A stretch of DNA of 64,000 nt from Phaeosaccion multiseriatum (taxonomy: Eukaryota > Protista > Ochrophyta, other classes): positions 1,550,001 through 1,614,000 of the forward strand of contig OZ218956.1 in assembly GCA_965112735.1 (NCBI GenBank), read 5' to 3'. This document shows, in pieces, positions 17,297 to 47,634 of this stretch (positions are counted from its first letter, which is position 1; each line of letters begins with the position of its first letter). The notes beneath the pieces are model-generated. The model saw only the letters and a list, made by a program, of their open reading frames with translations. It made no database searches and had not been told where the DNA came from. Position numbers and translations under genes: made by a program.

Positions 17297-18699
17297 ATGG
17301 GCTGCAGGGAAGGGGGAGGGGTGGGGGTAGGGCGGGGGTTGCTACTGCCGCTGCTGCTGCTGCTACTGGCTGTACTGCTCGATGCTTCCCCGGCAGCAGC
17401 ACTGGCGGGGAGTGTCCCGGAGACTGGAGGGCATACCAACAATTGGGCAGTCCTGGTGAGGGAGGGAGGGAGGAGGAAGTTGTTGAGGATACCGTGGAAA
17501 GTGGAGAAAGGAGGGCGGTGGGCTACCTTGCGTTTCCATGTGGAGAGTCTCGACGATGAGAATTACTCCTAACACCTCGCTCCCCTACCTGTCTCGCTTT
17601 CTTCTCTCTCCCTCTTGACTGCTCTCCCCTCGCACGCAACCAAAACACAAAGGTGGGAACCTCGCGCTACTGGTTCAACTACCGCCACAATGCCAACGTG
17701 CTCTCACTGTACCATAGCGTCAAGCGCCTGGGCATCCCAGACAGGCAGATCATCCTCATGATGGCCGACGATATGCCCTGCAACTCGCGCAACCCGTACC
17801 CAGGCCAGATGTTCACCGACCGCCAGCACAACCTCGACCTCTACGGGCCGGACGTGGAAGTAGACTACCGAGGCGACGAGGTAACAGTGGAGAGCTTTCT
17901 GCGCCTGCTCACGGGACGGGTGCTACCGGGCACCTCCTCCTCCAAGACCCTCCTCACCAACAGCCGGAGCAACATCCTCATTTACATGACCGGGCATGGA
18001 GGGGACGGCTTTCTCAAGTTTCAGGACACCGAGGAGATTGGCAGCTTCGACCTGGCCTATGCCCTGGAGGAGATGCACGTGAAGCGACGCTACGGGGAGA
18101 TACTCTTTATGGTGGACACTTGCCAGGCGAGCACTCTCTTTGAGGAGATTGCAAGTCCGCGGGTGTTGTGCGTGGGGAGTAGTCGCAGGGGGGAGAACTC
18201 ATACGCGCACCACACGGACAGCGTCATCGGTCTGGCTGTTATGGACCGCTTCACCTCCGCCACGCTCGACTTTTTCGAGCGACAAGCACATCCGACAGTT
18301 GGTGATACAGCAGCGCCGGCTGCCAATGCGAGCCAGCAGGGCAGAGGCAGAGAGCACTCTTCTTCCTCCTCCTCTTCCTCCTCCTCCTCCTCCTCCTCCT
18401 CGGCCCCTCCGTCCCTACATGACCTGTTCAAATCGTACCGCCCTGCGCAGCTCAAGTCCCATCCCGTCGTCATGGAGGAGCACTGGGGCGCGCCACCACC
18501 AGCAGCAGCAGCAGCAGCAGTTGGTGCTACAGATACAGCAGTTGGTGATCCAACGGGCAGCGGTGTTGCATGGGCCAAGGGGCGGGCGCTACGCTCTGTG
18601 CCCGTAACGGATTTCTTCGGATCGGTGCTGGAGGTGGAGCTCACTTCGGAGTTGTACGCCCTGGAGGGAGACTTGGACTGGGCGGCAGTGGAAGCGTAG
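17297..18699 (+). CDS. GPI8: GPI-anchor transamidase catalytic subunit (GPI8/PIG-K, peptidase C13)
   Basis: Exons 17297-17455 and 17653-18699. Signal peptide, then [10 protein letters not shown]|[29 protein letters not shown]; catalytic [14 protein letters not shown] and VDTCQA motifs. Confidence 0.95.
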
Positions 18700-23195: not shown

Positions 23196-23226
<31 letters not shown>

Positions 23227-26008: not shown

Positions 26009-26044
<36 letters not shown>

Positions 26045-28281
26045 GGCGATACAGACACACGCATGGCCACCATGGGGCGCTGCCTCTCTCGCTTCAAGCC
26101 CGCCTTGAGCTGCGCAAGCTCCTTCGCCTCCTCCTTTTGGACGTCTATCTCCCTCGTGAGCTGTGGCAAGGTGCCGATGGGGTCCGCTGCCATCTTCAGC
26201 CCAAGTGCTGCGAGTCGACTCGCGGTCCTGGAGGGAGGGCGGGAGGAGGAGGCAGGGAGGCAGGAAGGGAGGGAGGGAGGGAGGGGAGAAGAGGGGAGGA
26301 GGGGAGGGAGGGGAGGAAGGAGGGGAGGAAGGGAGGGAGGGGAGGAAGAGAAGAGGGCATGGCATGGGTGAGACCAAGCGGCGAAGGATCGTATCACAGC
26401 GCAGTACGTCAATTGACGACAGCACTGTTGGGTTAGTAAGGATACTCCTGGAAAAGCTCACCACACGCACTATGGACGCCAAAGCACACGTGCCCACACA
26501 CTTACACACACACCCACCCAAACAAACGCACTCACTCACTCACTCACTCACTCACTCACTCACTTTTTCATCTTTTTCTCGAGGGCAGCTACGGCAGCAG
26601 CAGTGTCAGCGGCGGCAGTCGAGTCCCCGGCTCCTCCGGCTCCGTGTGTCGCTCGCTTGGAGCCGGGGCTCTGGCTTTGGCTCTGCTGCTGCTGCTGCAT
26701 GTTCAGGACTTCCCCCTCCGGTACATTGGCAATATAGGCATCGAGATCGGGGTCGCTGCTGAAGCCGTCATCGTTAACCTCTCCAACCCCAAGTCGTCGT
26801 CCTCCTCCTCCTCCTCCTCCTCCTCCTCCTCCTCCTCCTCCTCCTCCTCCTCCTCCTCCTCCTCCTCCTCTTCCTCCTCCATTTCCTCCTCCTCCTCTTG
26901 CTCTGCCTCCGCTTTTGCCAAGCTCGCCACTCGATCCCCCCCCTCCCCGCTGAGGGCCCCATCCGCAGTCCGAGATGATCTCCACGCTGTCTTCGTCGGA
27001 GTCAGAGTCTACAGCGCCTTCGTAGGCTGCCGTCAGCTCTGCCACTTGGCGCTGCTTCTCCAAGGACAGAGGCGGCACTCGCGCCACGGCTCTCCCTTCT
27101 ATTCCTCCTCCTCCCCCTCCTCTGCCGCCTCCTCCTCCTCCTCCTCCTCCTCCTCCTCCTCCTCCTCCTCCTCCTCCTCCTCCTCCTCCTCCTCCTCCTC
27201 CTCCTCCTCCTCCTCCTCCTCGTCCTCGTCTTCCTCGCTGCTGCTGCTGCTGCTGCTGTTGCTGCTGTTGCTGCTGTTGCTGCTGTTGCTGCTGTTGCTG
27301 CTTGGTCTTCGTCTTGTAGGCCGGAGCCGACTGAGGCGGCTTTTTGACTGTCACGCACCTCCGCTGGCCGATGGGCGATGGCCGCCCCTTGCCCCTACCC
27401 TCAGTCTGCTTCACATATCTCGCGAGCTCGGAGTGTGGCACCATTCTCTGCACCTGGACATGTGCATCAACATCGTCTACGCTGCCACTCCCGATAGTCG
27501 GGCTCTCCTGGAGCTGAGCCAGCTGATACTGCATGGGAACGCGAGGTAGCTCCTGCAGCATGCCATGGGAGGCGAGCCTCGGCTGTTCCTGTGCCACCAA
27601 CTGCTGCTGCTGCTGGGCTCTGTTGCCAGCCCTGGCCGGCGCCGCCCCCCCTCCTTCCCCCCCTCCTCCTCCTCTCCGGGCTCCTGCTGTATCACCAACT
27701 GTCGCAGGAATAGGGGTGCGCATGATGCCCCCCAAGGCGGGGTAACGCTCCGCCTGGCAGGGCCAAGGAAGGGGCGAAGGGGGGAGGTGCACAAGGAAGG
27801 AGGAAAAAGAGGGGGAGAAAGTGGGAGGAGAGGAAGAGGAAGAAGATGCGGAGAGGGGGGATCAGAGGGGCGGGAGAGGGAGAATGAGAGTGGGAAAGAC
27901 AGAAGGGAGATGGGAGGACAGAATGAACGAGAGGAAAGGGAGAGGGGTTAAAGAGATGGCAGGATACCAGAGCAGGAGGAAAGAGGTCTTCCTGAAATGG
28001 GAAGGCTGCGACAGGAAAGGGGGGATGAAGGAGGAGAGGGTGTGCGGAGCGCGGGAATGGGGCCCAGGGATCGAAACGAAGGGAAGCACAAGCAGAGAAG
28101 CAGCAACAGCAGCATCAGCAGCAGCACCAGTAGTAGTAGCAGTCAGATGAAAATGGCTCCCTTCCTTCCTCCCTGCCTCCCTCCACTTTCTGCTCCCTTT
28201 CAAATGCACCTGCGTCTCCTCCTGCCACCACTCCACATGCTCGCTGTGGTTCCCCCGTTGCCTCTTCTTGCCGGGTGCCAT
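20685..28281 (-). CDS. BLM: RecQ-family DNA helicase of BLM/Sgs1 type (helicase, RQC and HRDC domains, plus a GRF-type Zn finger)
   Basis: Exons 28281-28210, 27753-26564, 26227-23050, 22784-22318, 22043-21641 and 21155-20685 join in frame. Motifs MPTGGGKS, DEAH, LTATA and YYQESGRAGRDG; RQC cysteines (CRR..CRGTCDNC); HRDC (DLSRR|VPLTKEELLKCEGMTENRVKSKGGEAILECI). N-terminal NHSEHVEWW resembles the Sgs1/Rqh1 N-terminus. Confidence 0.92.
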
Positions 28282-28599: not shown

Positions 28600-28808
28600 T
28601 CGGCCCTGGAAGAGGTTACAGTGTGCGCAATCACGGCTGGCGCCGGTCAAAATCAGTAATCAGACCCGGCTGGCGCCGGCCATAATCAGTAATCAGGCCC
28701 GGCTGGCGCCATAATCAGTAATCAGGCCGGCTGGCGCCGGCAGTAATCAGTAATCAGGCCGGCTGCGCCGGCCGTAATCAGTAATCTGATAACCTCTTCC
28801 AGGGCCGA
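28600..28808. mobile_element. MITE-like element 1 (209 bp) with perfect 19-bp TIRs and a 6-bp TSD
   Basis: TIRs TCGGCCCTGGAAGAGGTTA (28600-28618) and TAACCTCTTCCAGGGCCGA (28790-28808). AAAAAC flanks both sides (28594-28599, 28809-28814). Interior is ~5 copies of CCGGCTGGCGCCGGCCRTAATCAGTAATCAGG. Confidence 0.8.
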
Positions 28809-28811
28809 AAA

Positions 28812-29260
28812 AACCTCTTTTAAAACCTCTTCAACCTCTCAACCTCTCGAACATCTCCAACCTCTTGAACCTCTTGACAACACTCTAACCTCTCCAACCT
28901 CTCCAATGTAAACCTCGTGAAACTTTCCAACCTCTCCAACCCCTGGGGCATCTCCAAGCTCTATCACCTCTTGAACCTCTCCAAGCAAGCCCTCCAACCT
29001 CTTGAACCTCTCCAACCTCTGGGGCATCTCCAAGCTCTATCACCTCTTGAACCTCTCCAAGCAAGCCCTCCAACCTCTTGAACCTCTCCAACCTCTCCAA
29101 CCTCTGTAACCTCTCGGACCCAAGGTGTCCAAGCTCTCCAAGCTCTCCAAGCATGAACGTCAGTTGCCATCCTCTCCCCAGGGTCCTCTCATCAGATCCC
29201 AGTTGCCAGCCTCTCCCAACCTCTCCATCGCCCCCTCCCAGCATCGCTCCAACCTCTTGG
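28812..29260. repeat. Degenerate 9-bp-period array (AACCTCTCC/AACCTCTTG) with a 76-bp higher-order duplication
   Basis: Directly visible; the block starting GGGGCATCTCCAAGCTCTATCACC occurs at 28945 and 29021. Confidence 0.8.
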
Positions 29261-29341
29261 TATTAGCTAGGGGGGATGTGGAAGAATTTAATTTAAAAAA
29301 AGGAGGGAGGAAGGAGAGAGAGAGAGAAAGAATGCGCTCCC

Positions 29342-32159
29342 TCAGAATAGACTCTCCCCGCTGCTCTCGCTCGGGGGGCCGTTCCGAGTAGGCATGGCCT
29401 TGAGCACGTGCTCACATATGTACATGTCCCCGAGAATGTCGCAAGCCACATGCACTTGGGTTCTCTCCTTGCCGCCCAACCACCAGGGCAGGCGGTACCG
29501 CAGTTGCCGGAAGTTGTACTTGGCTGTAGCCCAATGACCGGGCAAGAAGATCACCGCACACGCGATGAAGAGCGCTCCCAAGATGCTCGTCGAAGCAGCG
29601 ATGATGATCATTTCCATCGATATGCCCGCCTCCTCCTCCTCCTCCTTCAACACCGCCCATAGGAGGAAGTTGGCGACAGACACGACACCTACGCTGGCGC
29701 CGAGCTGGAGCACAACATCCGATGCGAATATATCCTGCAGAAGACCACTGCTTTCAGCTTCCAACACCTCGGCCGCAGCGGTGCTACAGTCCAAGGCGGA
29801 GGCAAAGCCCAACACCAAGAAGGACACCTCAACTGCGCTGCTTGTATTGGTCGCGGATGACGACAGCTGTCGCGCTTGCAACTCCATCACTGACGCTTGC
29901 CCTATTTGTCCCGACTCCTCCTCGCCGTTCGCCGTCCAACCGTTTACCCCTCCCCATTCTTCTTGATACCCTCCACCTCCTCCTCCTGTCCCTACTGTAG
30001 CACCTGCCCCTCCTGCTTCCCCTGCCCCTTCTCCTCCTCCTGCCGCCGCTGCTGCCGTCGCTGCCGCTGCTCCTGGGGCTCCTCCTGCTTGTGACCGCGG
30101 TGAAGTTGGCGGGTGTGGTGGAAGATACGACGGACCCTGGAGCTGTAATCGACGCGCCTCTTCCTCTGAGTTCCAGACCACCTCACGAATGGAGTCGATG
30201 TAAATGTTGTCTGAGTCTATGAACGACGACGAAAGGACGTTGAGAGTCAGTTTGAAGGAACCCTGGATGCCGGCATTGAAGGTATCTGCACCAAGCCCGA
30301 CCAGCACGCAAGTCCCGTTGAGGTAGTTCAGAGAATCGACACCGAAGTCGTCCGGAAGCGGCTCGAGTGTCGGAGCTGCTGTTGGGGCCAATGTTGGTGC
30401 TGTGCTTGGGGCGGCTGTTGGAGCTGCTGTTGGGGCTGCTGTAGGTGTTGCTGTCGGGGCTAGTGTTGGAGCTACTGTTGGGGCTGCTGTTGGTGCTGCT
30501 GTGGGCGCCTGAGGAAACGAGAGGGGGAGGAGGGGGGGGGGGCAAGATCAGTCACTATCATCCGTTCAGAGGATAGAAGACTGGGGGCACACTTTGCGCC
30601 CACAAAGGGAGACAAAGAGGAGGCAGAAGGAAGGGGGAGGGAGCGAAGGACAGTCGGAAGTAGGCAACACGAAGTAGTAGGCAACACGAACCTCAGTCGG
30701 GGCAAGGGTTGGGGCAGTGGTCGGAGCCAGCGTAGGCGCCTGAGAGCGACGATTCGAGCACGGGCAAGAGCGGAGGAGAGTGATTATACTACACGGGAGA
30801 GCAAGTAAGGAGGGAACAGGCATGACACAAACGAACCTGAGTCGGGGCAGCAGTTGGTGCAGCGGTCGGAGCAGCCGTAGGCGCCTGACAACGACGATTG
30901 GAAAACATGCATGAATGAGAAGTGGGGTTGGAAGCAATCAAAGCGAAGGAAAGACAATCGACAAAACGAATTTGAGTCTGGGCTTAGCTAAGGTTGGGGC
31001 AGCGGTCGGAGCAAGTAGGCGCCTGAGCAAGACCATTCGAGAAAGGGCAACAGCGGAGGAGGACAGAGATTGTACACGCCGGTCTACAACAGAGACGTAG
31101 ACAGAAGGAGGAAGGAAGGATGGGCAATGGAGAACAGCACGAACCTGAGTCGGGGCCAAGGTTGGGGCGATGGTCGGAACAGCCGTAGGCGCCTGAACAA
31201 GACGATTCGGAAACGCATGGAGAAGTTTGGTCACACAGACTGGCCTCACCGGGACAGGGTAAGGAAGGGGTGAGGGAAACGCCAATACGAACCAGAGTGG
31301 GGGCCACGGATGGGGCGGCGGTGGGGGCAGTCGTAGGTGCCTGAGAAAGACGATTCGGAACAACCCATTCGGAAGGCGAAGCAAGGTGGTGCAGGTGGGC
31401 TAGTTAGAGAACGAGCGAGCAAGGATGATGAAGGAGAGCCAAGAAATGCCAGCACGAACCTGAGTCGGTGCTAAGGTTGGGGCCACGCTCGGAGCAGCCG
31501 TAGGCGCCTGAGCAAGGCGATTCGGGACATCACAAGAATGAGAAACAAAGAACTTCCCTTAGCTTAGTCAGCTAGTCTAGCTAGGCTAACAGCGGTCAAT
31601 TAGTAATGGCAAAACAAACCTGAGTCGGCACTGCAGTTGGTGCGGCTGTTGGTGCTACGGTCGGAGCTGCTGTCGGTGCTACGGTCGGAGCTGCTGTGGG
31701 AGCTCTGGTCGGCGCTGCTGTGGGAGCTGGTGTGGGAGCGTTGGTGTATCCCAGGTCCAACTCTGCAGGAGGCATCTCTCCCGAGTCGTCTCCAATGTCA
31801 GATGTGCTCCCCGAGCCAAGTCTACCACTGAGAAGTTATCGGGCAAAACATCACCGCAAAGGGGCAGTAGATGGGGGCCGGAAACCGAGTAAGAGGAGGA
31901 GGAGAAGTCAGGAGGAGAAGGAGTGAAGAGGAGCAGCGGACAGTAAGGGAGGAGCATTCCGGGAGCAAAGAAGCGGCTGAGGCTGAGGGGGTGGCTGAGG
32001 GGGGGCAGTCAGGATGTGGAGTGGAGGAGGGGTTTCAGGAGGAGTGCGGCACCGAGACAGCGGATGGGGCTTCACACTGATGCAGTGGGTCGAGCACTGG
32101 GTCTATAGACTGCTCACAACAAAGCAAGAAGCACTTTTCTCACGCCCCTCGTCAGGGCA

Positions 32160-32220
<61 letters not shown>

Positions 32221-32937
32221 AGAGAGGCCGACAAGAAAACAGTATTCATAGCTATGATCCAGGTGATCGCTTCGGTTTCAGTTCGTTCACTCACTTGCCC
32301 CCCTCTCCCCAGCAGAATATGTTGGAGTTCGTGTCGAGGATGGCACACATGTGCTCATATCCAGTACACATGGCCACTGCGGTACGGCCTGTGCCGATGT
32401 CAATCTGTCGCACGGGAAAGAGACAAGAGAGAGGGGTCGGAAACGCTGAGGTAGGGCCAGGTGTTGCCTGGCTGGGGCGAGTGGACGGCCATGGAGAGGC
32501 AAGCAAGGGACCGCCGTCGGAGCAGGAGAGAGTCGCCCCAGCTATAACAGACACACTCACGCACCTCCGCCAGACCAGCCATATCCCCGGAAGCATCCCC
32601 AATAGTGCTGTCACCCGACTCCTGCCCCAACTCTCCGTTGAGGTTAGATCCCCAGCACTTTAATGCGCCTGTAAAAATAGATGATAGCGGCATCGAAAGA
32701 CGACGATGAGTGAACTTGAGTTTCGAGTATTCGAACTACAGAACAACAGTCCAGGAGGACATGTGCCTGCCACCTTGCCTTACCATTGTCCAAAATAGCA
32801 CACGTGTAGGACCCCCCACAGGAGACGGCCGTTGCCGTCCGGCCGGTGCCGAGATTGACTGTAACCAGGTCGTCTCCCATAGTACTGGTGACGTGACCAG
32901 CGGACGTCTGTGAGTCAGTTCCCAGCTGCGAGACACG

Positions 32938-32980
<43 letters not shown>

Positions 32981-34374
32981 CAGGGGGGGGAGGACGTAGG
33001 ATAGAAGTGAGAGTAGAAGAAGGAAGAAAAGACAAAAGAGGAGGGGGAAGCATGATACAAGGCAAGCAAAGGGAAGAACGTGGTAGCAATAGGCAGCGGC
33101 GGTGAGGTAGGGGATGGTAGCGCCACGACATAGGGGGTTGTAGCGACACGAGATAGGAGATGGTAGCTAGCACCACGAGATTGGGGATGGTAGCACCACG
33201 AGATAAAGGTCGGTGCTTACCTGGCCTACACGGGTCGACGTGCATGCGGTGTGTGCGCAGCGCAAACGGGCGAGAGGAGCCCGTGGGCAGTGGGGAGAGA
33301 GGCACACGCGAGGAAGACAAGGGGGGAGAGAGGGCGACGAGGGAAGGAATGAACGTACGCGCGTCAAATCCGTGCTGCATTCTGTCCAGACCAGGGGAGT
33401 GGGAAGGAAACCCAACGTCAAACCCAGCCCCTCCTCTACGCTACACCCAAGTTTCGACTCCACTCACGCACCCGAGTTGTTACTTCCCCAGCACACCACA
33501 TCAGCGGTGTCCAGTATGGCACAGGTGTGATAGTCGCCGGCCGATATCGCCACAGCCGTCCGACCCGTCCCGAGGTCGACGTCAGCCGCGGCGGTGTCGG
33601 GGGACAGCACATCGTCAGTGCTCTCCGTACCCAGCTGGCCTTCGTCCCCGCGGCCAAAGCATCTGTAGTGGAGCACAGCGAGGGAACTTGTTGGTGGCCG
33701 AAGAGATTCCTTAGTCAAGCTAACGGACACCAGGTACTAATCATTCTGGATTGAGCGGAGGGAGGCGGACGGATTGAATTACCTGACTGCTCCGTCGTTG
33801 AGCCGCACACATGTGTGCAAGAAGCCGACCGCGAACTCCTCAACGGTCCGGCCTGACAGAAAGTCAAGATTGCTCAGCGCACCCATCTCGCCCGTCATAT
33901 CTCCCTCTCCGACACTCAACACGGAGCCAGTTCCGGCCCCTCCCTCGGGGGATGCGCCCCAGCAATAGGAGCCACCGGAGAAGATGGCACACTGGGTGTC
34001 ACCCTGCCCGTGGCTCACTGAGACGGCGGTGCTGCCTGTTTGTATCATACTGTACGTTCGAATGCAGTTGTTGGGTGGGGGGGGCTCGGGGCTGAGTGTG
34101 TAGTTGTCAAATTCAGGAGAAGGAGGAGCAGGGTGAGACATGCGCTCCCTTCCTTGGGGCAGTGCTCCTAAGGAGGAAGTATGTAAAGCGCTGTGACGCA
34201 TTCACTTACGGCGTGAGGTTGGGAGTGGAAAAGTCTTGGGCGCTGGAAGTGTCGATGCCGAGCTGTCCGTTGGCATTTGCTCCTGTTCACATAGCAGCAC
34301 ATCGAAACCACGTCAGAAGGCAGGGCTGGAGATGCGTTAGGCAGAGAGGGAGAAAGGCGTCTCTCTCTCTCTCT

Positions 34375-34430
<56 letters not shown>

Positions 34431-34928
34431 CCTGTCCCTCTTTCTCTTGCGCCTCTCTCTCTATGTGTGTGTGTGCGTGCTCTAGCTATGGGGGGGGCTC
34501 GATATTGCACGTATTCAAGTCGTAGGCGGAGCCTGCCCTCGAAAGTCATCCAGTACCGAACTTACCCCAGCAGAAATCGACCCATCGCCGTAGGACACAC
34601 ACGTATGATGGGCGCCACCTCCAATCGAAGAGGGCGTCTCCCCGCTGATCGAGGTGGGGAGCTGAACACGGGTCATCGAGCCGCTTACCTCCCCAGAACT
34701 ATCGCCGATGTTGGAGGACCCATCGAAGCCAAGGGTGTTGTCATTCTGCGCACCCCAGCAGGTCACTTCGTCGTTAAACAAGAAGCATGTGTGTTCATCG
34801 CCAGTGTGGCAGGCCGCCGGGGCGGTGATTGCACTGCCTGCCGCAAATCTCTTGGGAAGCAGCAGACACATCCATACTCGAATCATTAGCCTCTGCTGCA
34901 CCATTTTCGGTTGCTGTCTACTAAACAT
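29342..34928 (-). pseudogene. RCC1-propeller / PT-stalk / TM surface protein, copy A; frameshifted in exon 1 (pseudogene or assembly indel)
   Basis: Same exon structure as copies B and C, but CAGAAATCGA at 34571-34580 has one A fewer than CAGAAAATCGA in B and C, turning GDGSIFCWG into GDGSISAG. Confidence 0.6.
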
Positions 34929-35400
34929 GGCTCTTAATGCTCACACAGCCCGCTCTGACGAGGGGAGGCAGGTGCAGACGATGGTGATGGTGTCCACTCT
35001 CGTGTTTATCCCATCTGGTGCTATGTTGAGCAGCCTATAAGGCCCTTTCCTTACACGATCCGTGTCCGAACACATCCTCCTTCCCGGCCGTACAACATCA
35101 TGTTGCTGGTGCCCCCCCAGCTCTCGCTAGAGAATGCACTACCACAGCCTTGCTCCCAATGGTATGTCTCCTATTGGCCTTATGGCTATCTCCTACCGAT
35201 TTATCTCTTGGTAAAATGCTTTCCTTGGCTGGCGGGACCATGACCCCAAACAGTTACAGAATGTTTAGACCGGCACCGCTGGGAGTCCTGACCGAAAATG
35301 AAACTGTAGCTCCGGCGGTTTCGGGCGACCCTCGCGGATTTTCGATAAGACCACGACTCCAGACACGGAAGGATGCGAGAGAGAGAGAGAGCTTGCTCGC

Positions 35401-38400
35401 TCAGAGTAGACTCTCCCCGCTGCTCTCGCTCGGGGGACCGTTCCGAGTAGGCATGGCCTTGAGCACGTGCTCACATATGTACATGTCCCCGAGAATGTCG
35501 CAAGCCACATGCACTTGGGCCCTCTCCTTGCCGCCCAACCACCAGGGCAGGCGGTACCGCAGTTGCCGGAAGTTGTACTTGGCTGTAGCCCAATGACCGG
35601 GCAAGAATATCACCGCACACGCGATGAAGAGCGCTCCCAAGATGCTCGTCGAAGCAGCGATGATGATCATTTCCATCGACATGCCCGCCTCCTCCTCCTC
35701 CTTCAACACCGCCCATAGGAAGAAGTTGGCGACAGACACGACACCTACGCTGTCGCCGAGCTGGAGAACAACGTCCGATGCGAATATATCCTGCAGAAGA
35801 CCACTGCTTTCAGCTTCCAACACCTCGGCCGCAGCGGTGCTACAGTCCAAGGCGGAGGCAAAGCCCAACACCAAGAAGGACACCTCAACTGCGCTGCTTG
35901 TATTGGTCGCGGATGACGACAGCTGTCGCGCTTGCAGCTCCATCACTGACGCTTGCCCTATCTGTCCCGACTCCTCCTCGCCGTTCGCCGTCCAACCGTT
36001 TACCCCTCCCCATTCTTCTTGATACGCTCCACCTCCTCCTCCTGTCCCTACTGTAGCACCTGCCCCTCCTGCTTCCCCTGCCCCTTCTCCTCCTCCTGCC
36101 GCCGCTGCTGCCGTCGCTGCCGCTGCTCCTGGGGCTCCTCCTGCTTGTGACCGCGGTGAAGTTGGCGGGTGTGGTGGAAGATACGACGGACCCTGGAGCT
36201 GCAATCGACGCGCCTCTTCCTCTGAGTTCCAGACCACCTCACGAATGGAGTCGATGTAAATGTTGTCTGAGTCTATGAGCGACGAAAAGACATTGAGAGT
36301 CAGTTTGAAGGAACCCTGGATGCCGGCATTGAAGGTATCTGCACCAAGCCCGACCAGCACGCAAGTCCCGTTGAGGTAGTTCAGAGAATCGACACCGAAG
36401 TCGTCCGGAAGCGGCTCGAGTGTCGGAGCTGCTGTTGGGGCCAATGTTGGTGCTGTGCTTGGGGCGGCTGTTGGAGCTGCTGTTGGGGCTGCTGTAGGTG
36501 TTGCTGTTGGTGCTGCTGTTGGAGCTACTGTTGGTGCTGCTGTTGGTGCTGCTGTTGGTGCTGCTGTTGGTGCTGCTGTGGGCGCCTGAGGAAACGAGAG
36601 GTGGAGGAGGAGGGGGGGGGCAAGATTTGTCACTATCATCCGTTCAGAGGATAGAAGAGTGGGGGCACACTTTGCGCCCACAAAGGGAGACAAAGAGGAG
36701 GCAGAAGGAAGGGGGAGGGAGCGAAGGACAGTCGGAAGTAGGCAACACGAAGGGAGACCAATCAGCCAGTAGTAGGCAACACGAACCTCAGTCGGGGCAA
36801 GGGTTGGGGCAGTGGTCGGAGCCAGCGTAGGCGCCTGAGAGCGACGATTCGAGCACGGGCAAGAGCGGAGGAGAGTGGTTATACTACACGGGAGAGCAAG
36901 TAAGGAGGGAACAGGCATGACACAAACGAACCTGAGTCGGGGCAGCAGTTGGTGCAGCGGTCGGAGCAGCCGAAGGCGCCTGACAACGACGATTGGAAAA
37001 CATGCATGAATGAGAAGTGGGGTTGGAAGCAATCAAAGCGAAGGAAAGACAATCGACAAAACGATTTTGAGTCTGGGCTTAGCTAAGGTTGGGGCAGCGG
37101 TCGGAGCAAGTAGGCGCCTGAGCAAGACCATTCGAGAAAGGGCAACAGCGGAGGAGGACAGAGATTGTACACGCCGGTCTACAACAGAGACGTACACAGA
37201 AGGAGGAAGGAAGGATGGGCAATGGAGAACAGCACGAACCTGAGTCGGGGCCAAGGTTGGGGCAATGGTCGGAACAGCCGTAGGCGCCTGAACAAGACGA
37301 TTCGGAAACGCATGGAGAAGTTTGGTCACACAGACTGGCCTCACCGGGACAGGGTAAGGAAGGGGTGAGGGAATCGCCATTACGAACCAGAGTTGGGGCC
37401 ACAGATGGGGCGGCGGTGGGGGCAGTCGTAGGTGCCTGAGAAAGACGATTCGGAACAACCCATTCGGAAGGCGAAGCAAGGTGGTACAGGTGGGCTAGTT
37501 AGAGAACGAGCGAGCAAGGATGATGAAGGAGAGCCAAGAAATGCCAGCACGAACCTGAGTCGGGGCTAAGGTTGGGGCCACGCTCGGAGCAGCCGTAGGC
37601 GCCTGAGCAAGGCGATTCGGGACATCACAAGAATGAGAAACAAAGAACTTCCTTTAGCTTAGTCAGCTAGTCTAGCTAGGCTAACAGCGGTCAATTAGTA
37701 ATGGCAAAACAAACCTGAGTCGGCACTGCAGTTGGTGCGGCTGTTGGTGCTACGGTCGGAGCTGCTGTCGGTGCTACGGTCGGAGCTGCTGTGGGAGCTC
37801 TGGTCGGCGCTGCTGTGGGAGCTGGTGTGGGAGCGTTGGTGTATCCCAGGTCCAACTCTGCAGGAGGCATCTCTCCCGAGCCGTCTCCAATGTCAGATGT
37901 GCTCCCCGAGCCAAGTCTACCACTGAGAAATTATCGGGCAAAATATTACCGCAAAGGGGCAGTAGATGGGAGCAGGGAAGCGAGTAAACAGGAGAACGAG
38001 AAGTGAGGAGGAGAAGGAGTGAAGAGGAGCAGCGGACAGTAAGGGAGGAGCATTCCGGGAGCAAAGAAGTGGCTGAGGGGGGGCAGTCAGGATGTGGAGT
38101 GGAGGAGGGGTTTCAGGAGGAGTAGGGCGCCGAGACAGGGGATGGGGCTTCACACTGATGCAGTGGGTCCAGCACTGGGTCCATAGACTGCTCACAACAA
38201 AGCAAGAAGCACTTTTCTCACGCCCTCGTCAGGGCAGCACTTTCTAAATGCAGGAGATAGAGAGAGGGGGGGGGGGGGGGGGGAGAAGAAGCAGCCAGTA
38301 CTCGTTCACTCACCTAGCCCCCTCTCCCCAGCAGAATATGTTGGAGTTCGTGTCGAGGATGACACAAATGTGCTCATATCCAGTACACATGGCCACTGCG

Positions 38401-38956
38401 GTACGGCCTGTGCCGATGTCAATCTGTCGCACGGGAAAGAGACAAGAGAGAGGGGACGGAATCGCTGAGGTAGGGCCAGGTGTTGCCTGGCTGGGGCGAG
38501 TGGACGGCCATGGAGCGGGAAGCAAGGGACCGCCGTCGGAGCAGGAGAGAGTCGCCCCAGCTATAACAGACACACTCACGCACCTCCGCCAGACCAGCCA
38601 TATCCCCGGAAGCATCCCCAATAGTGCTGTCACCCGACTCCTGCCCCAACTCTCCGTTGAGGTTAGATCCCCAGCACTTTAATGCGCCTGTAAAAATAGA
38701 TGATAGCGGCATCGAAAGATGACGATGAGTGAACTTGAGTTTCGAGTATTCGAACTACAGAACAACAGTCCAGGAGGACATGTGCCCGCCGCCTTGCCTT
38801 ACCGTTGTCCAAAATAGCACACGTGTAGGCCCCCCCACAGGAGACGGCCGTTGCCGTCCGGCCGGTGCCGAGATTGACTGTAACCAGGTCGTCTCCCATA
38901 GTACTGGTGACGTGACCAGCGGACGTCTGTGAGTCAGTTCCCAGCTGCGAGACACG

Positions 38957-38990
<34 letters not shown>

Positions 38991-40325
38991 CAGGGGAGGG
39001 AGGACGTGGGATAGAAGTGAGAGTAGAAGAAGGAAGAAAAGACAAAAGAGGGGGAAGCATGATACAAGGCAAGCAAAGGGGAAAACACTGGTAGCAATAG
39101 GCAGCGGCGGTGAGGTAGGGGATGGTAGCTAGCACCACGAGATTGGGGATAGTAGCACCACGAGATAAAGGTCGGTGCTTACCTGGCCTACACGGGTCGA
39201 CGTGCATGCGGTGTGTGCGCAGTGCAAACGGGCGAGAGGAGCCCGTGGGCAGTGGGGAGAGAGGCACACGCGAGGAAGACAAGGGGGGAGAGAGGGCGAC
39301 GAGGGAAGGAATGAACGTACGCGCGTCAAATCCGTGCTGCATTCTGTCCAGACCAGGGGAGTGGGAAGGAAACCCAACGTCAAACCCAGCCCCTCCTCTA
39401 CGCTACACCCAAGTTTCGACTCCACTCACGCACCCGAGTTGTTACTTCCCCAGCACACCACATCAGCGGTGTCCAGTATGGCACAGGTGTGCCAGTCGCC
39501 GGCCGATATCGCCACAGCCGTCCGACCCGTCCCGAGGTCGACGTCAGCCGCGGCGGTGTCGGGGGACAGCACATCGTCAGTGCTCTCCGTACCCAGCTGG
39601 CCTTCGTCCCCGCGGCCGAAGCATCTGTAGTGGAGCACAGCGAGGGAACTTGTTGGTGGCCGAAGAGATTCCTTAGTAAAGCTAACGGACACCAGGTACA
39701 TATCACTCTGGATTGAGCGGAGGGAGGCGGACGGATTGACTTACCTGACTGCTCCATCGTTGAGCCGCACACATGTGTGGATATAGCCGACCGCGAATTC
39801 CTCAACGGTCCGGCCTGACAGAAAGTCAAGATTGCTCAGCGCACCCATCTCGCCCGTCATATCTCCCTCTCCGATACTCAGCACGGAGCCAGTTCCGGCC
39901 CCTCCCTCGGGGGATGCACCCCAGCAATAGGAGCCACCGGAGAAGATGGCACACTGGGTGTCACCCTGCCCGTGGCTCACTGAGATGGCGGTGCTGCCTG
40001 TTTGTATCATACTGTACGTTCGAATGCAGTTGTTGGGTGGGGGGGGCTCGGGGCTGAGTGTGTAGTTGTCAAATTCAGGAGTAGGAGGAGCAGGGTGAGA
40101 AATGCGCTCCCTTCCTTCGGGCAGTGCTCCTAAGGAGGAAGCATGTAAAGCGTTGTGACGCATTCACTTACGGCGTGAGGTCGGGAGTGGAAAAGTCTTG
40201 GTCGCTGGAAGTGTCGATGCCGAGCTGTCCGTTGGCATTTGCTCCTGTTCACATAGCAGCACATCGAAACCACGTCAGAAGGCAGGGCTGGAGACGCGAT
40301 AGGAAGAGAGAGAGAGAGGCGTCTC

Positions 40326-40421
<96 letters not shown>

Positions 40422-40913
40422 TTTCTCTTGCGCCTCTCTCTATGTGTGTGTGTGCGTGCTCTAGCTATGGGGGGGGGGCTCGATATTGCACACATTCAAG
40501 TCGTAGGCGGAGCCTGCCCTCGAAAGTCATCCGGTACAGAACTTACCCCAGCAGAAAATCGACCCATCGCCGTAGGACACACACGTATGATAGCGGCCAC
40601 CTCCAATCGAAGAGGGCGTCTCCCCGCTGAGGGAGGTGGGGAGCTGAACGCGGGTCATCGAGCCGCTTACCTCTCCAGAACTATCGCCGATGTTGGAGGA
40701 CCCATCGAAGCCAAGGGTGTTGTGATTTTGCGCACCCCAGCAGGTCACTTCGTCGTTAAACAAGAAGCATGTGTGTTCATCGCCAGTGTGGCAGGCCGCC
40801 GGGGCGGTGATTGCACTGCCTGCCGCAAATCTCTTGGGAGGCAGCAGTAGACATATCCATACTCGAATCATTAGCCTCTGCCGCACCATTTTCGGTTGCT
40901 GTCTACTAAACAT
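35401..40913 (-). CDS. Type I membrane protein, copy B: hydrophobic leader, 7 RCC1/BLIP-II repeats, Pro/Thr/Ala stalk, SEA-like region, TM helix, ~65-aa tail
   Basis: Seven GxxHTC..CWG/CFG blades assemble across GT-AG introns, including the 5-nt exon 39187-39183. 48-nt stalk exons (e.g. 37602-37555, 36834-36787). TM helix [23 protein letters not shown]. Confidence 0.85.
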
Positions 40914-41339
40914 GGCTCTTAATGCTCACGCAGCCCGCTCTGACAAGGGGAGGCAGGTGCAGACGATGGCGATGGTGTCCACTCTCGTGTGTATCCTATT
41001 TGGTGCTATGTTGAACAGCCTAAGGTCCATTCCTTACACGATCCGTGTCCGAACGCTCCTTCCTGTACCAACATGTTGCTGGTGCCCCCCCAGTGAGAAA
41101 AATAAAGAGAGAGAACTAAGGGGTTTCGAGAATGCACTACCACAGCTTTGCTCCCAATCGTATGTCTCCTATTGTCCTTATGGCTATCTCCTACCGATTT
41201 ATCTCTAGGTAAAGAGTAACAAGGAAAAGAAAAAAAGAGGAGAACGTCAGGGCTGGTGGTGGGCCCAGATCGAACATGAAACTGTAGCTCCGACGGCGGT
41301 GTTGGATGATTTTCAAACCACGACTCCAGAGAGAGAGTT

Positions 41340-41622
41340 TCGACCCCTGACACGCTATCGCTCACATTCTCGATAGCGCGCTATCGGCCGCCGGCCAATA
41401 GCGGATAGCGTGCCGGCTGGCGCCGGCCGATAGCGGATAGCGTGCCGGCTGGCGCCGGCCGATAGCGGATAGCGCGCCGGCTGGCGTCAGCTCTCCCCCC
41501 CCCCCCCCCCCCCGGTGCGGTAGCAGCTGACGCTGGCGATAGCGGATAGCGCGCCGGAGATAGCGGATAGCGTGCCGGCTGGCGCCGGCGATAGCGTTAG
41601 CGGATAGCGTGTCAGGGGTCGA
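41340..41622. mobile_element. MITE-like element 2 (283 bp) with 20-bp TIRs and a 6-bp TSD
   Basis: TIRs TCGACCCCTGACACGCTATC and GATAGCGTGTCAGGGGTCGA. AGAGTT flanks both sides (41334-41339, 41623-41628). The paralogous site next to the copy B stop (~35380-35400) is empty. Internal 32-bp repeats GATAGCGGATAGCGTGCCGGCTGGCGCCGGCC. Confidence 0.88.
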
Positions 41623-41635
41623 AGAGTTTGCTCCC

Positions 41636-44600
41636 TCAGAGTAGACTCTCCTCGCTGCTCTCGCTCGGGGAGCCGTTCCGAGTAGGCATGGCCTTGAGCA
41701 CGTGCTCACATATGTACATGTCCCCGAGAATGTCGCAAGCCACATGCACTTGGGCCCTCTTCTTGCCGCCCAACCACCAGGGCAGGCGGTACCGCAGCTG
41801 CCGAAAGTTGTACTTGGCTGTAGCCCAATGACCGGGCAAGAATATCACCGCACACGCGATGAAGAGCGCTCCCACGATGCTCGTCGAAACAGCGATGATG
41901 ATCATTTCCATCGACATGCCCGCCTCCTCCTCCTCCTCCTTCAACACCGCCCATAGGAGGAAGTTGGCGACAGACACGACACCTACGCTGTCGCCGAGCT
42001 GGACCACAACGTCCGATGCAAATATATCCTGCAGAAGACCACTGCTTTCAGCTTCCAACACCTCGGCGGCAGCGGCGCTACAGTCCAAGGCGGAGGCAAA
42101 GCCCAACACCAAGAAGGACACCTCAACGGCGCTGCTTGTATTGGTCGCGGATGATGACAGCTGTCGCGCTTGCAGCTCCGTCACTGACGCTTGCCCTATT
42201 TGTCCGGACTCCTCCTCGCCGTTCGCCTTCCAACCGTTTACCCCTCCCCATTCTTCTTCTTGGTACCCTCCACCTCCTCCTCCTGTCCCTACTGTTGCAG
42301 CTGCCCCTCCTGCTTCCCCTGCCCCTTCTCCTCCTCCTGCCACTGCTGCTGCCGTCGCTGCCGCTGCTCCTGGGGCTCCTCCTGCTTGTGACCGCGGTGA
42401 AGTTGGCGGGTGTGGTGGAAGATACGACGGACCCTGGAGCTGCAATCGACGCGCCTCTTCCTCTGAATTCCAGACCACCTCACGAATGGAGTCGATGTAA
42501 ATGTTGTCTGAGTCTATGAGCGACGAAAAGACATGGAGAGTCAGTTTGAAGAAACCTTGGATGCCGGCATTGAAGGTATCTGCACCAAGCCCGACCAGCA
42601 CGCAAGTCCCGTTGAGGTAGTTCAGAGAATCGACACCGAAGTCGTCCGGAAGCGGCTCGAGTGTCGGAGCTGCTGTTGGGGCCAATGTTGGTGCTGTGCT
42701 TGGGGCGGCTGTTGGAGCTGCTGTTGGTGCTGCTGTAGGTGTTGCTGTCGGGGCGGCTGTTGGAGCTACTGTTGGTGCTAGTGTTGGTGCTGCTGTTGGT
42801 GCTGCTGTTGGTGCTGCTGTTGGTGCTGCTGTGGGCGCCTGAGGAAACGAGAGGTGGAGGAGGGGGGGGGGGCAAGATCTGTCACTATCATCCGTTCAGA
42901 GGATAGAAGAGTGGGGGCACACTTTGCGCCCACAAAGGGAGACAAGGAGGAGGCAGAAGGAAGGGGGAGGGAGCGAAGGACAGTCGGAAGTAGGCAACAC
43001 GAAGTAGTAGGGAACACGAACCTCAGTCGGGGCAAGGGTTGGGGCAGTGGTCGGAGCCAGCGTAGGCGCCTGAGAGCGACGATTCGAGCACGGGCAAGAG
43101 CGGAGGAGAGTGGTTATACTACACGGGAGAGCAAGTAAGGAGGGAACAGGCATGACACAAACGAACCTGAGTCGGGGCAGCAGTTGGTGCAGCGGTCGGA
43201 GCAGCCGTAGGCGCCTGACAACGACAATTGGAAAACATGCATGAATGAGAAGTGGGGTTGGAAGCAATCACAGCGAAGGAAGGCCACTCGACAAAATGAG
43301 TTTGAGTCTGGGCTTAAGGTTGGGGCAGCGGTCGGAGCAAGCAGGCGCCTGAGCAAGACCATTCGAGAAAGGGCAACAGCGGAGGAGGACAGAGATTGTA
43401 CACGCCGGTCTACAACAGAGACGTACACAGAAGGAGGAAGGAAGGATGGGCAATGGAGAACAGCACGAACCTGAGTCGGGGCCAAGGTTGGGGCGATGGT
43501 CGGAACAGCCGTAGGCGCCTGAACAAGACGATTCGGAAACGCATGGAGAAGTTTGGTCACACAGACTGGCCTCACCGGGACAGGGTAAGGAAGGGGTGAG
43601 GGAAACGCCAATACGAACCAGAGTGGGGGCCACGGATGGGGCGGCGGTCGGGGCAGTCGTAGGTGCCTGAGAAAGACGATTCCGAACAACCCATTCGGAA
43701 GGCGAAGCAAGGTGGTACAGGTGGGCTAGTTAGAGAACGAGCGAGCAAGGATGATGAAGGAGAGCCAAGAAATGCCAGCACGAACCTGAGTCGGGGCTAA
43801 GGTTGGGGCCACGCTCGGAGCAGCCGTAGGCGCCTGAGCAAGGCGATTCGGGACATCACAAGAATGAGAAACAAAGAACTTCCCTTAGCTTAGTCAGCTA
43901 GTCTAGCTAGGCTAACAGCGGTCAATTAGTAATGGCAAAACAAACCTGAGTCGGCACGGCAGTTGGTGCGGCTGTTGGTGCTACGGTCGGAGCTGCTGTC
44001 GGTGCTACGGTCGGAGCTGCTGTGGGAGCTCTGGTCGGCGCTGCTGTGGGAGCTGGTGTGGGAGCGTTGGTGTATCCCAGGTCCAACTCTGCAGGAGGCA
44101 TCTCTCCCGAGTCGTCTCCAATGTCAGATGTGCTCCCCGAGCCAAGTCTACCACTGAGAAATTATCGGGCAAAACATCACCGCAAAGGGGCAGTAGATGG
44201 GGGCAGGAAACCGAGTAAGAGGAGGAGGAGAAGTCAGGAGCAGAAGGAGTGAAGAGGAGCAGCGGACAGTAAGGGAGGAGCATTCCGGGAGCAAAGAAGC
44301 GGCTGAGGCTGAGGGGGTGGCTGAGGGGGGGCAGTCAGGATGTGGAGTGGAGGAGGGGTTTCAGGGGGAGTGCGGCGCCGAGACAGCGGATGGGGCTTCA
44401 CACTGATGCAGTGGGTCCAGCACTGGGTCCATAGACTGCTCACAACAAAGCAAGAAGCACTTTTCTCACGCCCGTCCTCAGGGCAGCACTTTCTAAATGC
44501 AGGAGAGAGAGGGGGGGTGGGGGGGGGGGAAGGAACAGAACTCGTTCACTCACTTGCCCCCCTCTCCCCAGCAGAATATGTTGGAGTTCGTGTCGAGGAT

Positions 44601-45196
44601 GGCACACATGTGCTCATATCCAGTACACATGGCCACTGCGGTACGGCCTGTGCCGATGTCGATCTGTCGCACGGGAAAGAGACAAGAGAGAGGGGACGGA
44701 AACGCTGAGGTGGGGCCAGGTGTTGCCTGGCTGGGGCGAGTGGACGGCCATGGAGAGGCAAGCAAGGGACCGCCGTCGGAGCAGGAGAGAGTCGCCCCAG
44801 CTATAACAGACACTCTCACGCACCTCCGCCAGACCAGCCATATCCCCGGAAGCATCCCCAATAGTGCTGTCACCCGACTCCTGCCCCAACTCTCCTTTGC
44901 TGTTAGATCCCCAGCACTTTAATGCGCCTATAAAATTAGATGATAGCGGGAACGAAAGACGACGATGAGTGAACTTGAGTTTCGAGTATTCGAACTACAG
45001 AACAACAGTCCAGGAGGACATGTGCCTGCCACCTTGCCTTACCATTGTCCAATATAGCACACGTGTAGGACCCTCCACAGGAGACGGCCGTTGCCGTCCG
45101 GCCGGTGCCGAGATTGACTGTAACCAGGTCGTCTCCCATAGTACTGGTGACGTGACCAGCGGACGTCTGTGAGTCAGTTCCCAGCTGCGAGACACG

Positions 45197-45245
<49 letters not shown>

Positions 45246-47634
45246 CAGGGGGGGGAGGACGTAGGATAGAAGTGAGAGTAGAAGAAGGAAGAAAAGACAA
45301 AAGAGGAGGGGGAAGCATGATACAAGGCAAGCAAAGGGAAGAACGTGGTAGCAATAGGCAGCGGCGGTGAGGTAGGGGATGGTAGCGCCACGACATAGGG
45401 GGTTGTAGCGACACGAGATAGGAGATGGTAGCTAGCACCACGAGATTGGGGATAGTAGCACCACGAGATAAAGGTCGGTGCTTACCTGGCCTACACGGGT
45501 CGACGTGCATGCGGTGTGTGCGCAGTGCAAACGGGCGAGAGGAGCCCGTGGGTAGTGGGGAGAGAGGCACACGCGAGGAGGACAAGGGGGGAGAGAGGGC
45601 GACGAGGGAAGGAATGAACGCACGCGCGTCAAATCCGTGCTGCATTCTGTCCAGACCAGGGGAGTGGGAAGGAAACCCAACGTCAAACCCAGCCCCTCCT
45701 CTACGCTACACCCAAGTTTCGACTCCACTCACGCACCCGAGCTGTTATTTCCCCAGCACACCACATCAGCGGTGTCCAGTATGGCACAGGTGTGCCAGTC
45801 GCCGGCCGATATCGCCACAGCCGTCCGACCCGTCCCGAGGTCGACGTCAGCCGCGGCGGTGTCGGGGGACAGCACATCGTCAGTGCTCTCCGTACCCAGC
45901 TGGCCTTCGTCCCCGCGGCCAAAGCATCTGTAGTGGAGCACAGCGAGGGAACTTGTTGGTGGCCGAAGAGATTCTTTAGTAGAGCTAACGGACACCAGGT
46001 ACTAATCATTCTGGATTGAGCGGAGGGAGGCGGACGGATTGACTTACCTGACTGCTCCATCATTGAGCCGCACACATGTGTGCTTATAGCCGACCGCGAA
46101 TTCCTCAACGGTTCGGCTTGACAGAAAGTCAAGATTGCTCAGCGCACCCATCTCGCCCGTCGCATCTCCCTCTCCGATACTCAAAACGAGGCCAGTTCCG
46201 GCCCCTCCCTCGGGGGATGCACCCCAGCAATAGGAGCCACCGGAGAAGATGGCACACTGGGTACCACCGTGCCCGTGGCTCACTGAGACGGCGGTGGTGC
46301 CTGTTTGTATCATACTGTACGTTCGAATGCAGTTGTTGGGTGGTGGGGCTCGGGGCTGAGTGTGTAGTTGTCAAATTGAGGAGAAGGAGCAGCAGGGTGA
46401 GACATGCGCTCCCTTCCTTGGGGCAGTGCTCCTAAGGAGGAAGTATGTAAAGCGCTGTGACGCATTCACTTACAGCGTGAGGTCAGGAGTGGAAAAGTCT
46501 TGGGCGCTGGAAGTCTCGATGCCGAGCTGTCCGTTGGTATTATCTCCTGTTCACATAACCGCAAAGCGAAACCACGTGTCAGAAGGCAGGGCTGGAGATG
46601 CATTAGGAAGAGACGGAGAAAGGCGTCTCTCTCTCTGTCTCTCTCTCATCTTCTCTCTCTCTTCTCTCTATCTCCATCTCTATCTCCCTCTCTCTTCTCT
46701 CTCTCTCACTCTCTCTCTCTCTCTCCCTCCCCCTCCCTCTCCCTCTCCCTCTCCCTCTCCCCCTGCCTCTCCCTCTCCCCCTCCCTCTCCCCCTCCCCCT
46801 CCCTCTCCCTCTCTCTCTCCCTCTCCCTCTCCCTCTCCCTCTCCCTCTCCCTCTCCCTCTCCCTCTCCCTCTCCCTCTCCCTCTCCCTCTCCCTCTCCCT
46901 CTCCCTCTCCCTCTCCCTCTCCCTCTCCCTCTCCCTCTCCCTCTCCCTCTCCCTCTCCCTCTCCCTCTCCCTCTCCCTCTCCCTCTCCCTCTCCCTCTCC
47001 CTCTCCCTCTCCCTCTCCCTCTCCCTCTCCCTCTCCCTCTCCCTCTCCCCCTCCCTCTCCCTCTCCCTCTCCCTCTCCCTCCCGCTCCCTATCTCTCCCC
47101 TCTCCCTCTCCCTCCCTCTCTCCCTCCCCCCCTCCCTCTCCCTCTCCCCCTCCCTCTCCCTCTCCCTCTGCTCTGCTCTGCTCTACTCTTACGGTTGGGG
47201 GCTCGGTATTACACACATTCAAGTCGTAGGAGCCCCCCATGAAAGGAAATGGGACCGAACTTACCCCAGCAGAAAATCGACCCATCGCCGTAGGACGCAC
47301 ACGTATGATAGGCGCCCCCTCCAATCGAAGAGGGCGTCTCCCCGCTGATCGAGGTGGGGAGCTGAACACGGGTCATCGAGCCGCTTACCTCCCCAGCATT
47401 ATCTCCGATGTTGGAGGACCCATCGAAGCCAAGGGTGCCGTCACTTGTTTCCTGGCCCCAGCAGGTCACTTCGTCGTTGAACAAGAAGCATGTGTGTTGA
47501 TCGCCAGTGTGGCAAGCCGCCGGGGCGGTGATTGCACTGCCTGCCGCAAATCTCTTGGGAAGCAGCAGGAGACACATCCATACTCGAATCATTAGCCTCT
47601 GATGCACCATTTTCGGTTGCTGTCTACTAAACAT
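41636..47634 (-). CDS. Type I membrane protein with RCC1 propeller, PT stalk and TM helix, copy C (most diverged propeller)
   Basis: Same exon structure as copy B with an intact frame; 5-nt exon 45490-45486; stalk exons 43833-43786 through 43069-43022. Confidence 0.85.
46735..47170. repeat. (CCCTCT)n hexamer expansion specific to intron 1 of copy C
   Basis: Directly visible; copies A and B carry only (CT)n here. Confidence 0.9.

Follow-up and report, generated by a model that had tools for sequence, protein, structure and literature searches.

What keeps three neighbouring genes nearly identical, introns included, while their proteins come to differ at short turns and loops on one face of a propeller is the question raised by a tandem array in Phaeosaccion multiseriatum (contig OZ218956.1, forward-strand positions 1,550,001 to 1,614,000; this stretch of 64,000 nucleotides [nt] is referred to as the window, and positions count from its first letter). 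Three direct repeats, each about 6 kilobases (kb) long and 93-96% identical across most of their length, lie in the window at 29.3-35.2, 35.4-41.2 and 41.6-47.8 kb, and there is no fourth copy inside these 64 kb. An original prediction, made from the sequence alone, had described three near-identical tandem genes for extracellular RCC1-type propeller proteins with variation concentrated on one face, and the repeats together with our gene models bear out the three genes. Diversifying selection on one face of the encoded propeller is well supported by the comparisons presented here.

Gene models were built by hand from GT-AG boundaries, with all three copies on the minus strand and each comprising 15 exons at identical intron positions. 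Copy C (41636-47634) is an intact gene of 970 amino acids, with exons 1 to 9 at 47634-47265, 46546-46474, 46314-46048, 45927-45737, 45490-45486, 45184-45043, 44927-44824, 44663-44554 and 44153-43946, and with exons 10 to 15 as five 48-nt exons within 43833-43022 followed by 42838-41636. Copy B (35401-40913) is likewise intact and encodes 963 amino acids, its exons 1 to 9 lying at 40913-40547, 40244-40172, 40011-39745, 39624-39434, 39187-39183, 38944-38803, 38687-38584, 38423-38314 and 37922-37715, and exons 10 to 15 again being five 48-nt exons (within 37602-36787) and then 36585-35401. Copy A (29342-34928) has the same 15 exons with a frameshift at the end of exon 1, leaving B and C as the sole intact copies as assembled. 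A 5-nt micro-exon (39183-39187 in copy B, 33221-33225 in A, 45486-45490 in C) has the same sequence in all copies; without it neither the reading frame nor the GQLG motif of blade 5 is complete, and since the gene model needs it, it is predicted to be spliced in.

The propeller region of copy B (37844-40811) falls in exons 1 to 9 and consists of seven RCC1/BLIP-II-type blades; that of copy C spans 44075-47532. Single exons gave Pfam matches to RCC1, RCC1_2, WD40_RLD and PT and PDB matches to UVR8, ACR4, BLIP-II and RCC1, and exon 3 reached an Atlas score of 0.98 against RCC1_2 clusters. Each of the seven blades has a C-x(8-10)-C-W/F-G cysteine pair, the blades are divided unevenly among exons of unequal length and phase, and the propeller is acidic (52-53 D/E against 11-12 K/R). 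A homologue with 42% identity that aligns over its full length was modelled as a seven-blade propeller (predicted local distance difference test [pLDDT] score of 96) with three clear strands per blade; its best structural match was UVR8 (Z 52, root-mean-square deviation 2-3), and it also matched RCC1, CRINKLY4 (CR4) and BLIP-II. Blade motifs and model together place the array proteins, by prediction, in the seven-blade RCC1-like/BLIP-II propeller superfamily.

Beyond the propeller lies a Pro/Thr/Ala-rich, mucin-like stalk (36412-37843 in copy B), which varies in length among the copies and is encoded in part by the five 48-nt phase-0 exons. A decayed sixth stalk exon sits in intron 12 (37066-37117 in B, 30971-31022 in A, 43301-43348 in C), with its donor site lost in all three copies. 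The membrane-proximal ectodomain that follows (35683-36411 in copy B) spans 240 residues and contains RRLQ and RQLS motifs and a Gly/Ala-rich insert, and the protein closes with a predicted transmembrane helix and tail (35404-35682; helix at 35682-35602, hydropathy 2.4 over 19 residues; tail of 66 residues). The original prediction had read this order as leader, blades, stalk, SEA-like region, transmembrane segment and conserved tail. Propeller, stalk, helix and tail stand; the frameshift of copy A had gone unmentioned, and the SEA-like label near the RRL motif is unconfirmed, with neither a Pfam match nor a homologue for that region (for the membrane-proximal ectodomain, the best Atlas score was 0.85, below 0.9, and the pLDDT of a single-sequence model was 34). 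The homologue search returned no relatives of the C-terminal ectodomain, helix and tail, and the tail has no Pfam match and no recognisable catalytic domain. The putative N-terminal leader, judged from hydropathy, is moderately hydrophobic only (best 10-residue mean 2.3); leader, cysteine pairs, stalk and single helix together suggest an extracellular location.

To describe where the copies differ, we set the top face of the propeller by motif, as two residues per GxxH turn plus four after each WG (six in blade 1), which amounts to 44 codons. Amino-acid variation affects 21 of these 44 codons and 18 of the 369 other propeller codons (Fisher p=4e-13), and 0 of 28 positions in the hairpins of the opposite face vary. 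The variable top-face codons of copy C start at 47499, 47454-47439, 47313, 47310, 46544, 46538, 46271, 46088, 46085, 45797, 45749, 45743, 45070, 44901, 44898, 44558 and 44555. As a control for mere lack of constraint, we restricted the comparison to positions that are variable across 45 distant homologues, and here 20 of 37 face positions change against 9 of 143 elsewhere (p=3e-10). At least two bases differ in 10 of the 21 variable top-face codons compared with 4 of 88 other differing codons, and at 11 of the 21 one or more copies have an aromatic residue, His or a charged residue. The original prediction thus holds in its central observation, that replacements recur at the xx of GxxH and in the loop after WG and that several are multi-base swaps to aromatic or charged residues, and each of its motif variants for blades 1 to 7 occurs as written in the gene models. 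We note that the change in the blade 5 loop (45743-45749, 39440-39446) also moves N-glycosylation sequons on the variable face, with one in A and B and two overlapping ones in C.

In the homologue model the Gxx turn links strands 1 and 2 and the WG loop exits strand 3, a topology that, by the geometry of a meander, would put turns and loops on the same face. In an alignment with BLIP-II, the variable xx of GxxH falls on the aromatic turn residues of every blade, and BLIP-II contacts its target solely via apical turns and interblade loops (10.1101/2024.08.26.609822). The xx positions also align with the UVR8 GWRHT motif, which carries W285 and the dimer residue R286 (PMC5108777). Both alignments agree with the earlier proposal that the variable turns line the binding face of RCC1-fold propellers.

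Replacement divergence (pN) on the top face was 0.12-0.23, with silent divergence of 0.03-0.07 elsewhere and 0.018-0.025 in clean introns. Over the whole gene, silent sites of copies A to C differ by 3-7%, above the 2% of clean introns. We fitted our own GY94-type codon model to the three sequences on a star tree. With sites fixed beforehand, the ratio of replacement to silent rates (dN/dS) was 5.1 on the top face against 0.35 for the rest (p=3.5e-8), and with double-base mutations included the top-face value was 3.4 (p=4e-4); estimates outside the top face were 0.3-0.4. Significance survives the removal of exon 1 or of the blade 1 loop, and turns and loops each show it when taken separately. 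A site-wise check had been proposed along with the original prediction; a site-blind comparison of M1a and M2a gave p=0.003. Of its 14 flagged sites 10 belong to the top face, the C-terminal third shows no signal, and the significance is lost with a double-base rate. Plain relaxation of the loops is rejected, both by the difference between 20 of 37 and 9 of 143 changed positions and by the dN/dS of 0.35-0.48 at other family-variable positions. Silent changes beside the loops are not enriched (5 of 84 against 16 of 285), which argues against imported tracts and leads us to reject long-tract import from distant paralogues as the main cause. The array thus shows what would be expected of diversifying receptors, a dN/dS above 1 at predicted contact sites with purifying selection elsewhere, the pattern being weaker in the site-blind double-base test.

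That the copies are genuine was examined in five sequencing runs that contain the stretch, none of them labelled as RNA, over positions 34470-40300. Three DNA runs of one sample cover the introns, and each has exact contigs across the copy A promoter and the A/B junction; shared segments have about three times the depth of copy-specific contigs (115-121 against 30-50 in run X1, 309 against 68-109 in run X4). These runs may derive from the assembly's own sample, in which case they test the assembly and not other strains. The three copies are real: mis-assembled haplotypes, a danger that the original prediction had itself raised, are rejected by the junction contigs and the three-fold depth. Extra contigs at single-copy depth align in exon-like pieces only and skip the blade 1 loop (joints 34663-34752, 40009-40165 and 35898-36194), and we read them as a probable fourth, more distant paralogue of the subfamily that would lie outside the window; in the blade 1 loop it cannot be aligned with copy A.

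Run X5, taken from a different sample, is RNA-like: one of its pieces coincides exactly with exon 9, several bins in introns and upstream contain nothing, and a 1551-nt record spanning exon 8 to exon 1 is too short to hold introns. Its main records match the fourth paralogue, and two minor records match copy C by the number of differences that separate them from B: 10, the number expected, over 38584-38802, and 14 where 15 were expected over 35395-35847, a stretch in which a 3-nt gap is shared as well. One minor record begins exactly where exon 7 ends and extends over exon 8 too, and intron 7 of copy C appears to be spliced out in this run. The X5 readings were drawn from summary tables, in which depth cannot rank expression.

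The frameshift of copy A stems from a one-base deletion in a T run of exon 1 (34574-34576, minus strand), where B and C have four bases and A has three; the reading frame is altered where the exon ends, and a stop follows at 34045-34047 after 146 codons. Copy A is thus a probable young pseudogene, or else the site of a one-base assembly error. Among the reads at the T run, B and C would be expected to yield contigs with the extra base, some of the X4 depth lacks it, and the contigs of the copies are merged; we lean towards a real frameshift rather than an error of assembly.

The original prediction had called the introns highly similar, and twelve of them indeed differ by 1.8-2.5%, with more in introns 1 and 8, which contain microsatellites. 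The upstream flanks of the copies diverge by 17-40%, with many gaps beyond 100 nt; a spacer of 472 nt (34929-35400) separates the stop of B from the start of A. Because the introns differ by 2% against 17-40% for the flanks, we prefer gene conversion over a simple recent duplication. Copy-specific differences are clustered in runs (p=5e-5), and the closest pair changes along the gene. The pattern would fit an array of greater age whose copies were made uniform by gene conversion or unequal crossing-over, a process that the binding face escaped.

Just past the stop of copy C lies an unstranded inverted-repeat element (41339-41623) with 21-nt perfect terminal repeats and internal 32-nt repeats; it is confined to the C/B spacer and missing from the homologous A/B spacer. 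A second element at 28600-28808 is bounded by perfect inverted repeats of 19 nt and contains about five internal repeats of 32 nt that have a GCTGGCGCCGG core in common with the first, and directly downstream of copy A follows a degenerate array of 9-10-nt CCTCT-type repeats (28817-29270). A tandem array of a 26-nt unit in about 50 copies occupies 59789-61161. On the minus strand, a long open frame (22759-26412) was recognised by eye as encoding a putative RecQ-like helicase core with an upstream zinc-finger-like (GRF-type) motif. The plus strand carries a gene for the GPI8/PIG-K transamidase of glycosylphosphatidylinositol (GPI) anchors (17653-18699), apparently intronless in an otherwise intron-rich genome. 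Its best matches are in Pylaiella, Ectocarpus, Chrysoparadoxa and Ascophyllum, and these matches to brown algae and Chrysoparadoxa identify the host as an ochrophyte alga.

Local comparison with fetched proteins, for which copy A was read through with N at the frameshift, found the closest full propellers at 36-42% identity. Close homologues mostly appear to be secreted or lipoprotein-like bacterial proteins, the named ones from Bdellovibrionota, Myxococcota and Actinobacteria, and a search of representative proteins with exon 1 gave repeat-rich best matches at 32-44% identity, none of the matches coming from this alga. A few proteins combine propeller, Pro/Ser/Thr stalk and C-terminal helix in full, among them P0120 from a eukaryotic collection and P0135 from a metagenome. 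P0135 (L001, 10001-11863) encodes leader, RCC1 propeller, Pro/Thr/Ser stalk and C-terminal helix in one intronless frame, and it sits on a 95-kb contig with a faint match to an origin-binding helicase, from either a eukaryote or a large virus.

We hypothesize that the array encodes a family of diversifying surface binders engaged in a biotic arms race, and we give this reading a probability of about 0.62. The paralogues would be type I membrane proteins in which a glycosylated stalk lifts the seven-blade propeller above the cell, with the rigid scaffold of blades held constant and the short turns and loops of one face (about 40 residues) serving as binding surface. Gene conversion or unequal crossing-over would hold the gene bodies near-identical while positive selection creates and keeps the differences on the face, so that each copy might bind a different partner or evade a different attacker. 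Copies would be born and lost, one being probably a young pseudogene and a fourth located elsewhere. The driver would be a changing foreign partner, such as a virus, parasite or bacterium that is bound by the protein or uses it to attach, and we consider this the most likely driver because the divergence lies between copies within one genome. We infer binding by the variable face, glycosylation, surface location and the nature of the partner from these features taken together. Of the interpretation first offered for the locus, a variable predicted-surface family of real copies with one face under diversifying selection is retained; the SEA-like domain is unconfirmed, and one copy looks frameshifted.

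Several points weigh against this hypothesis. The tail has no known signalling domain, the one-face mapping rests on homology and strand topology with a model taken from a homologue, and the top-face sites were first flagged after the variation had been seen, although known structures allow them to be defined. For three sequences that recombine, a codon model on a star tree is an approximation. The site-blind test with a double-base rate fitted to the propeller is not significant (likelihood-ratio test 2.2), a fit that is possibly a local optimum. The introns lessen this caveat: with 1 adjacent pair among 58 substitutions, they indicate that double-base mutation is rare here.

That test also leaves some room for a neutral explanation, in which the loops evolve free of constraint and dN/dS is inflated by multi-base mutations in clusters or by short tracts copied from older paralogues. 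Top-face positions are variable across distant homologues as well, the site-blind significance is lost with double-base mutations, and the more distant paralogue is a possible donor in an array of proven mosaic structure. Against it, other positions that are just as variable in the family change far less often (9 of 143) than those of the face (20 of 37), face pN (0.12-0.23) exceeds both silent (0.03-0.07) and intron (0.02) divergence, and the fixed-site dN/dS stays at about 3 even with double-base mutations, which are rare in the introns, with no silent hitch-hikers beside the loops. We regard this alternative as largely disfavoured already and leave it a small chance. A still smaller one, hardly more than slight, falls to assembly artefact, in which haplotypes or read errors would have been assembled into a false tandem array: the copies are highly identical and one has a homopolymer frameshift, yet there are three distinct sequences, exact A/B junction contigs, about three-fold shared depth, diverged spacers and an insertion in a single spacer.

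Two further alternatives concern the partner. If the proteins served gamete or self/non-self recognition, in the manner of the brown algal protein PKN, a partner cell of the same species would read the propeller and loop changes would set compatibility. The PKN-like layout, the selected distal face of PKN, a propeller that is acidic here too and an ochrophyte host related to brown algae speak for this; PKN, however, is quinoprotein-dehydrogenase-like, reported from brown algae only and diverging between species, whereas here near-identical copies diverge in one genome, and we consider such a role unlikely if conceivable. The proteins might instead be enzyme inhibitors, membrane-tethered or shed, whose face blocks a secreted microbial enzyme as in BLIP-II and whose head is freed at the RRL motif. 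Blade for blade, BLIP-II ranks with the closest relatives of solved structure, and it inhibits its enzyme via the same face; close homologues mostly appear to be secreted or lipoprotein-like bacterial proteins, and an RRLQ motif lies in the membrane-proximal ectodomain; but cleavage at RRL is a guess based on dibasic sites, and a long stalk with an anchor suits adhesion or sensing at least equally, making this function quite improbable.

Taking the arms-race hypothesis further, we tentatively suggest that ochrophytes might use extracellular RCC1/BLIP-II propellers, of a subtype found mainly in bacteria, as a genome-wide variable scaffold whose turns and loops, antibody-like and renewed by gene conversion, recognise microbes, viruses or compatible cells, an extension that we hold to be doubtful but worth stating. 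Seven GxxH turns and seven WG loops would vary, and tandem and dispersed copies would convert one another, with broken copies possibly acting as donors. If the system is genome-wide, the RCC1/BLIP-II propeller would join the few folds that serve as variable scaffolds for recognition. The subject bears on how algae detect pathogens, prey or partners at their surface; the candidates published for brown algae are mostly repeat proteins of the cytoplasm, with PKN as a single, recent example at the surface. Proteins that are more than 90% identical and differ mainly at about 20 mapped residues of one face would also offer a natural experiment on ligand specificity. In the literature library searched, which is incomplete, no paper turned up on RCC1-type surface proteins that undergo diversifying selection.

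Among known systems, BLIP-II (Streptomyces exfoliatus, PDB 1JTD) resembles the predicted array head in being an extracellular seven-blade RCC1-type propeller with GxxH turn and WG loop on one face. It differs as a soluble enzyme inhibitor with short blades, whereas the array propeller has a stalk and predicted anchor, is encoded by intron-rich eukaryotic tandem genes, and shows selection between paralogues. Uncharacterised bacterial RCC1_2 repeat proteins share with the array the long GDxxGEMG blade loop and the paired cysteines. In UVR8, functional residues occupy the same GxxH turn, while the array proteins are predicted to be extracellular and have cysteine pairs; membership of the UVR8 family is rejected, as the array has neither the GWRHT tryptophan triad of blades 5-7 nor the VP tail that define UVR8 (PMC5108777) and its blade motifs are of the type GDWH/GDYH, GGSY/GGAY and GYEH. 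The plant receptors CR4 and ACR4 (PDB 7A0J, 7A0K; PMC4617170; 10.1101/2020.08.10.245050) are, like the array proteins by prediction, single-pass and equipped with an extracellular RCC1-related propeller of seven repeats. The crinkly repeats of CR4 number seven, are extracellular and each have a C(x~10)CWG motif (PMC4617170), a spacing found in the array as C-x(8-10)-C-W/F-G in 7 of 7 blades. Membership of the CR4 receptor kinases is nevertheless rejected, with no Pfam match to a TNFR-like cysteine-rich or kinase domain and only the stalk and the 66-residue tail in their place; CR4s are conserved developmental receptors, and the array proteins have a long mucin-like stalk instead of the CR4 domains.

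Closer in kind are the diversifying systems of brown algae, where a precedent for candidate receptors of this sort exists (PMC3341825). The ROCO-LRR and NB-ARC-TPR candidates of Ectocarpus (PMC3341825) are ochrophyte birth-and-death families with diversifying selection at predicted ligand-contact residues, a pattern shared by the array. Those candidates are cytoplasmic, contain GTPase or NB-ARC domains and place one repeat in each exon with exon shuffling, whereas the array proteins are predicted to be extracellular and have no signalling domain; membership is rejected, since no such domain was found and the blades are not one per exon. PKN, a brown algal female gamete recognition protein, has a signal peptide, seven-blade propeller, mucin-like region, one helix and a short tail, and its positively selected sites all lie on the distal propeller face (10.64898/2026.02.20.706836). 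The array matches this layout (its signal peptide by hydropathy only) and shares positive selection on one face. The PKN propeller is annotated as quinoprotein-dehydrogenase-like (IPR011047) with no RCC1 match, while that of the array is RCC1-type, a comparison made by annotation; the single mention of RCC1 in the PKN paper is a product name. PKN also diverges between species and the array between tandem copies. We regard PKN as an analogue rather than a demonstrated homologue, homology being unlikely as judged from the annotations. The logic of a diversifying receptor is already known from brown algal ROCO/NB-ARC proteins and PKN; among the papers searched, none places it on an RCC1 scaffold.

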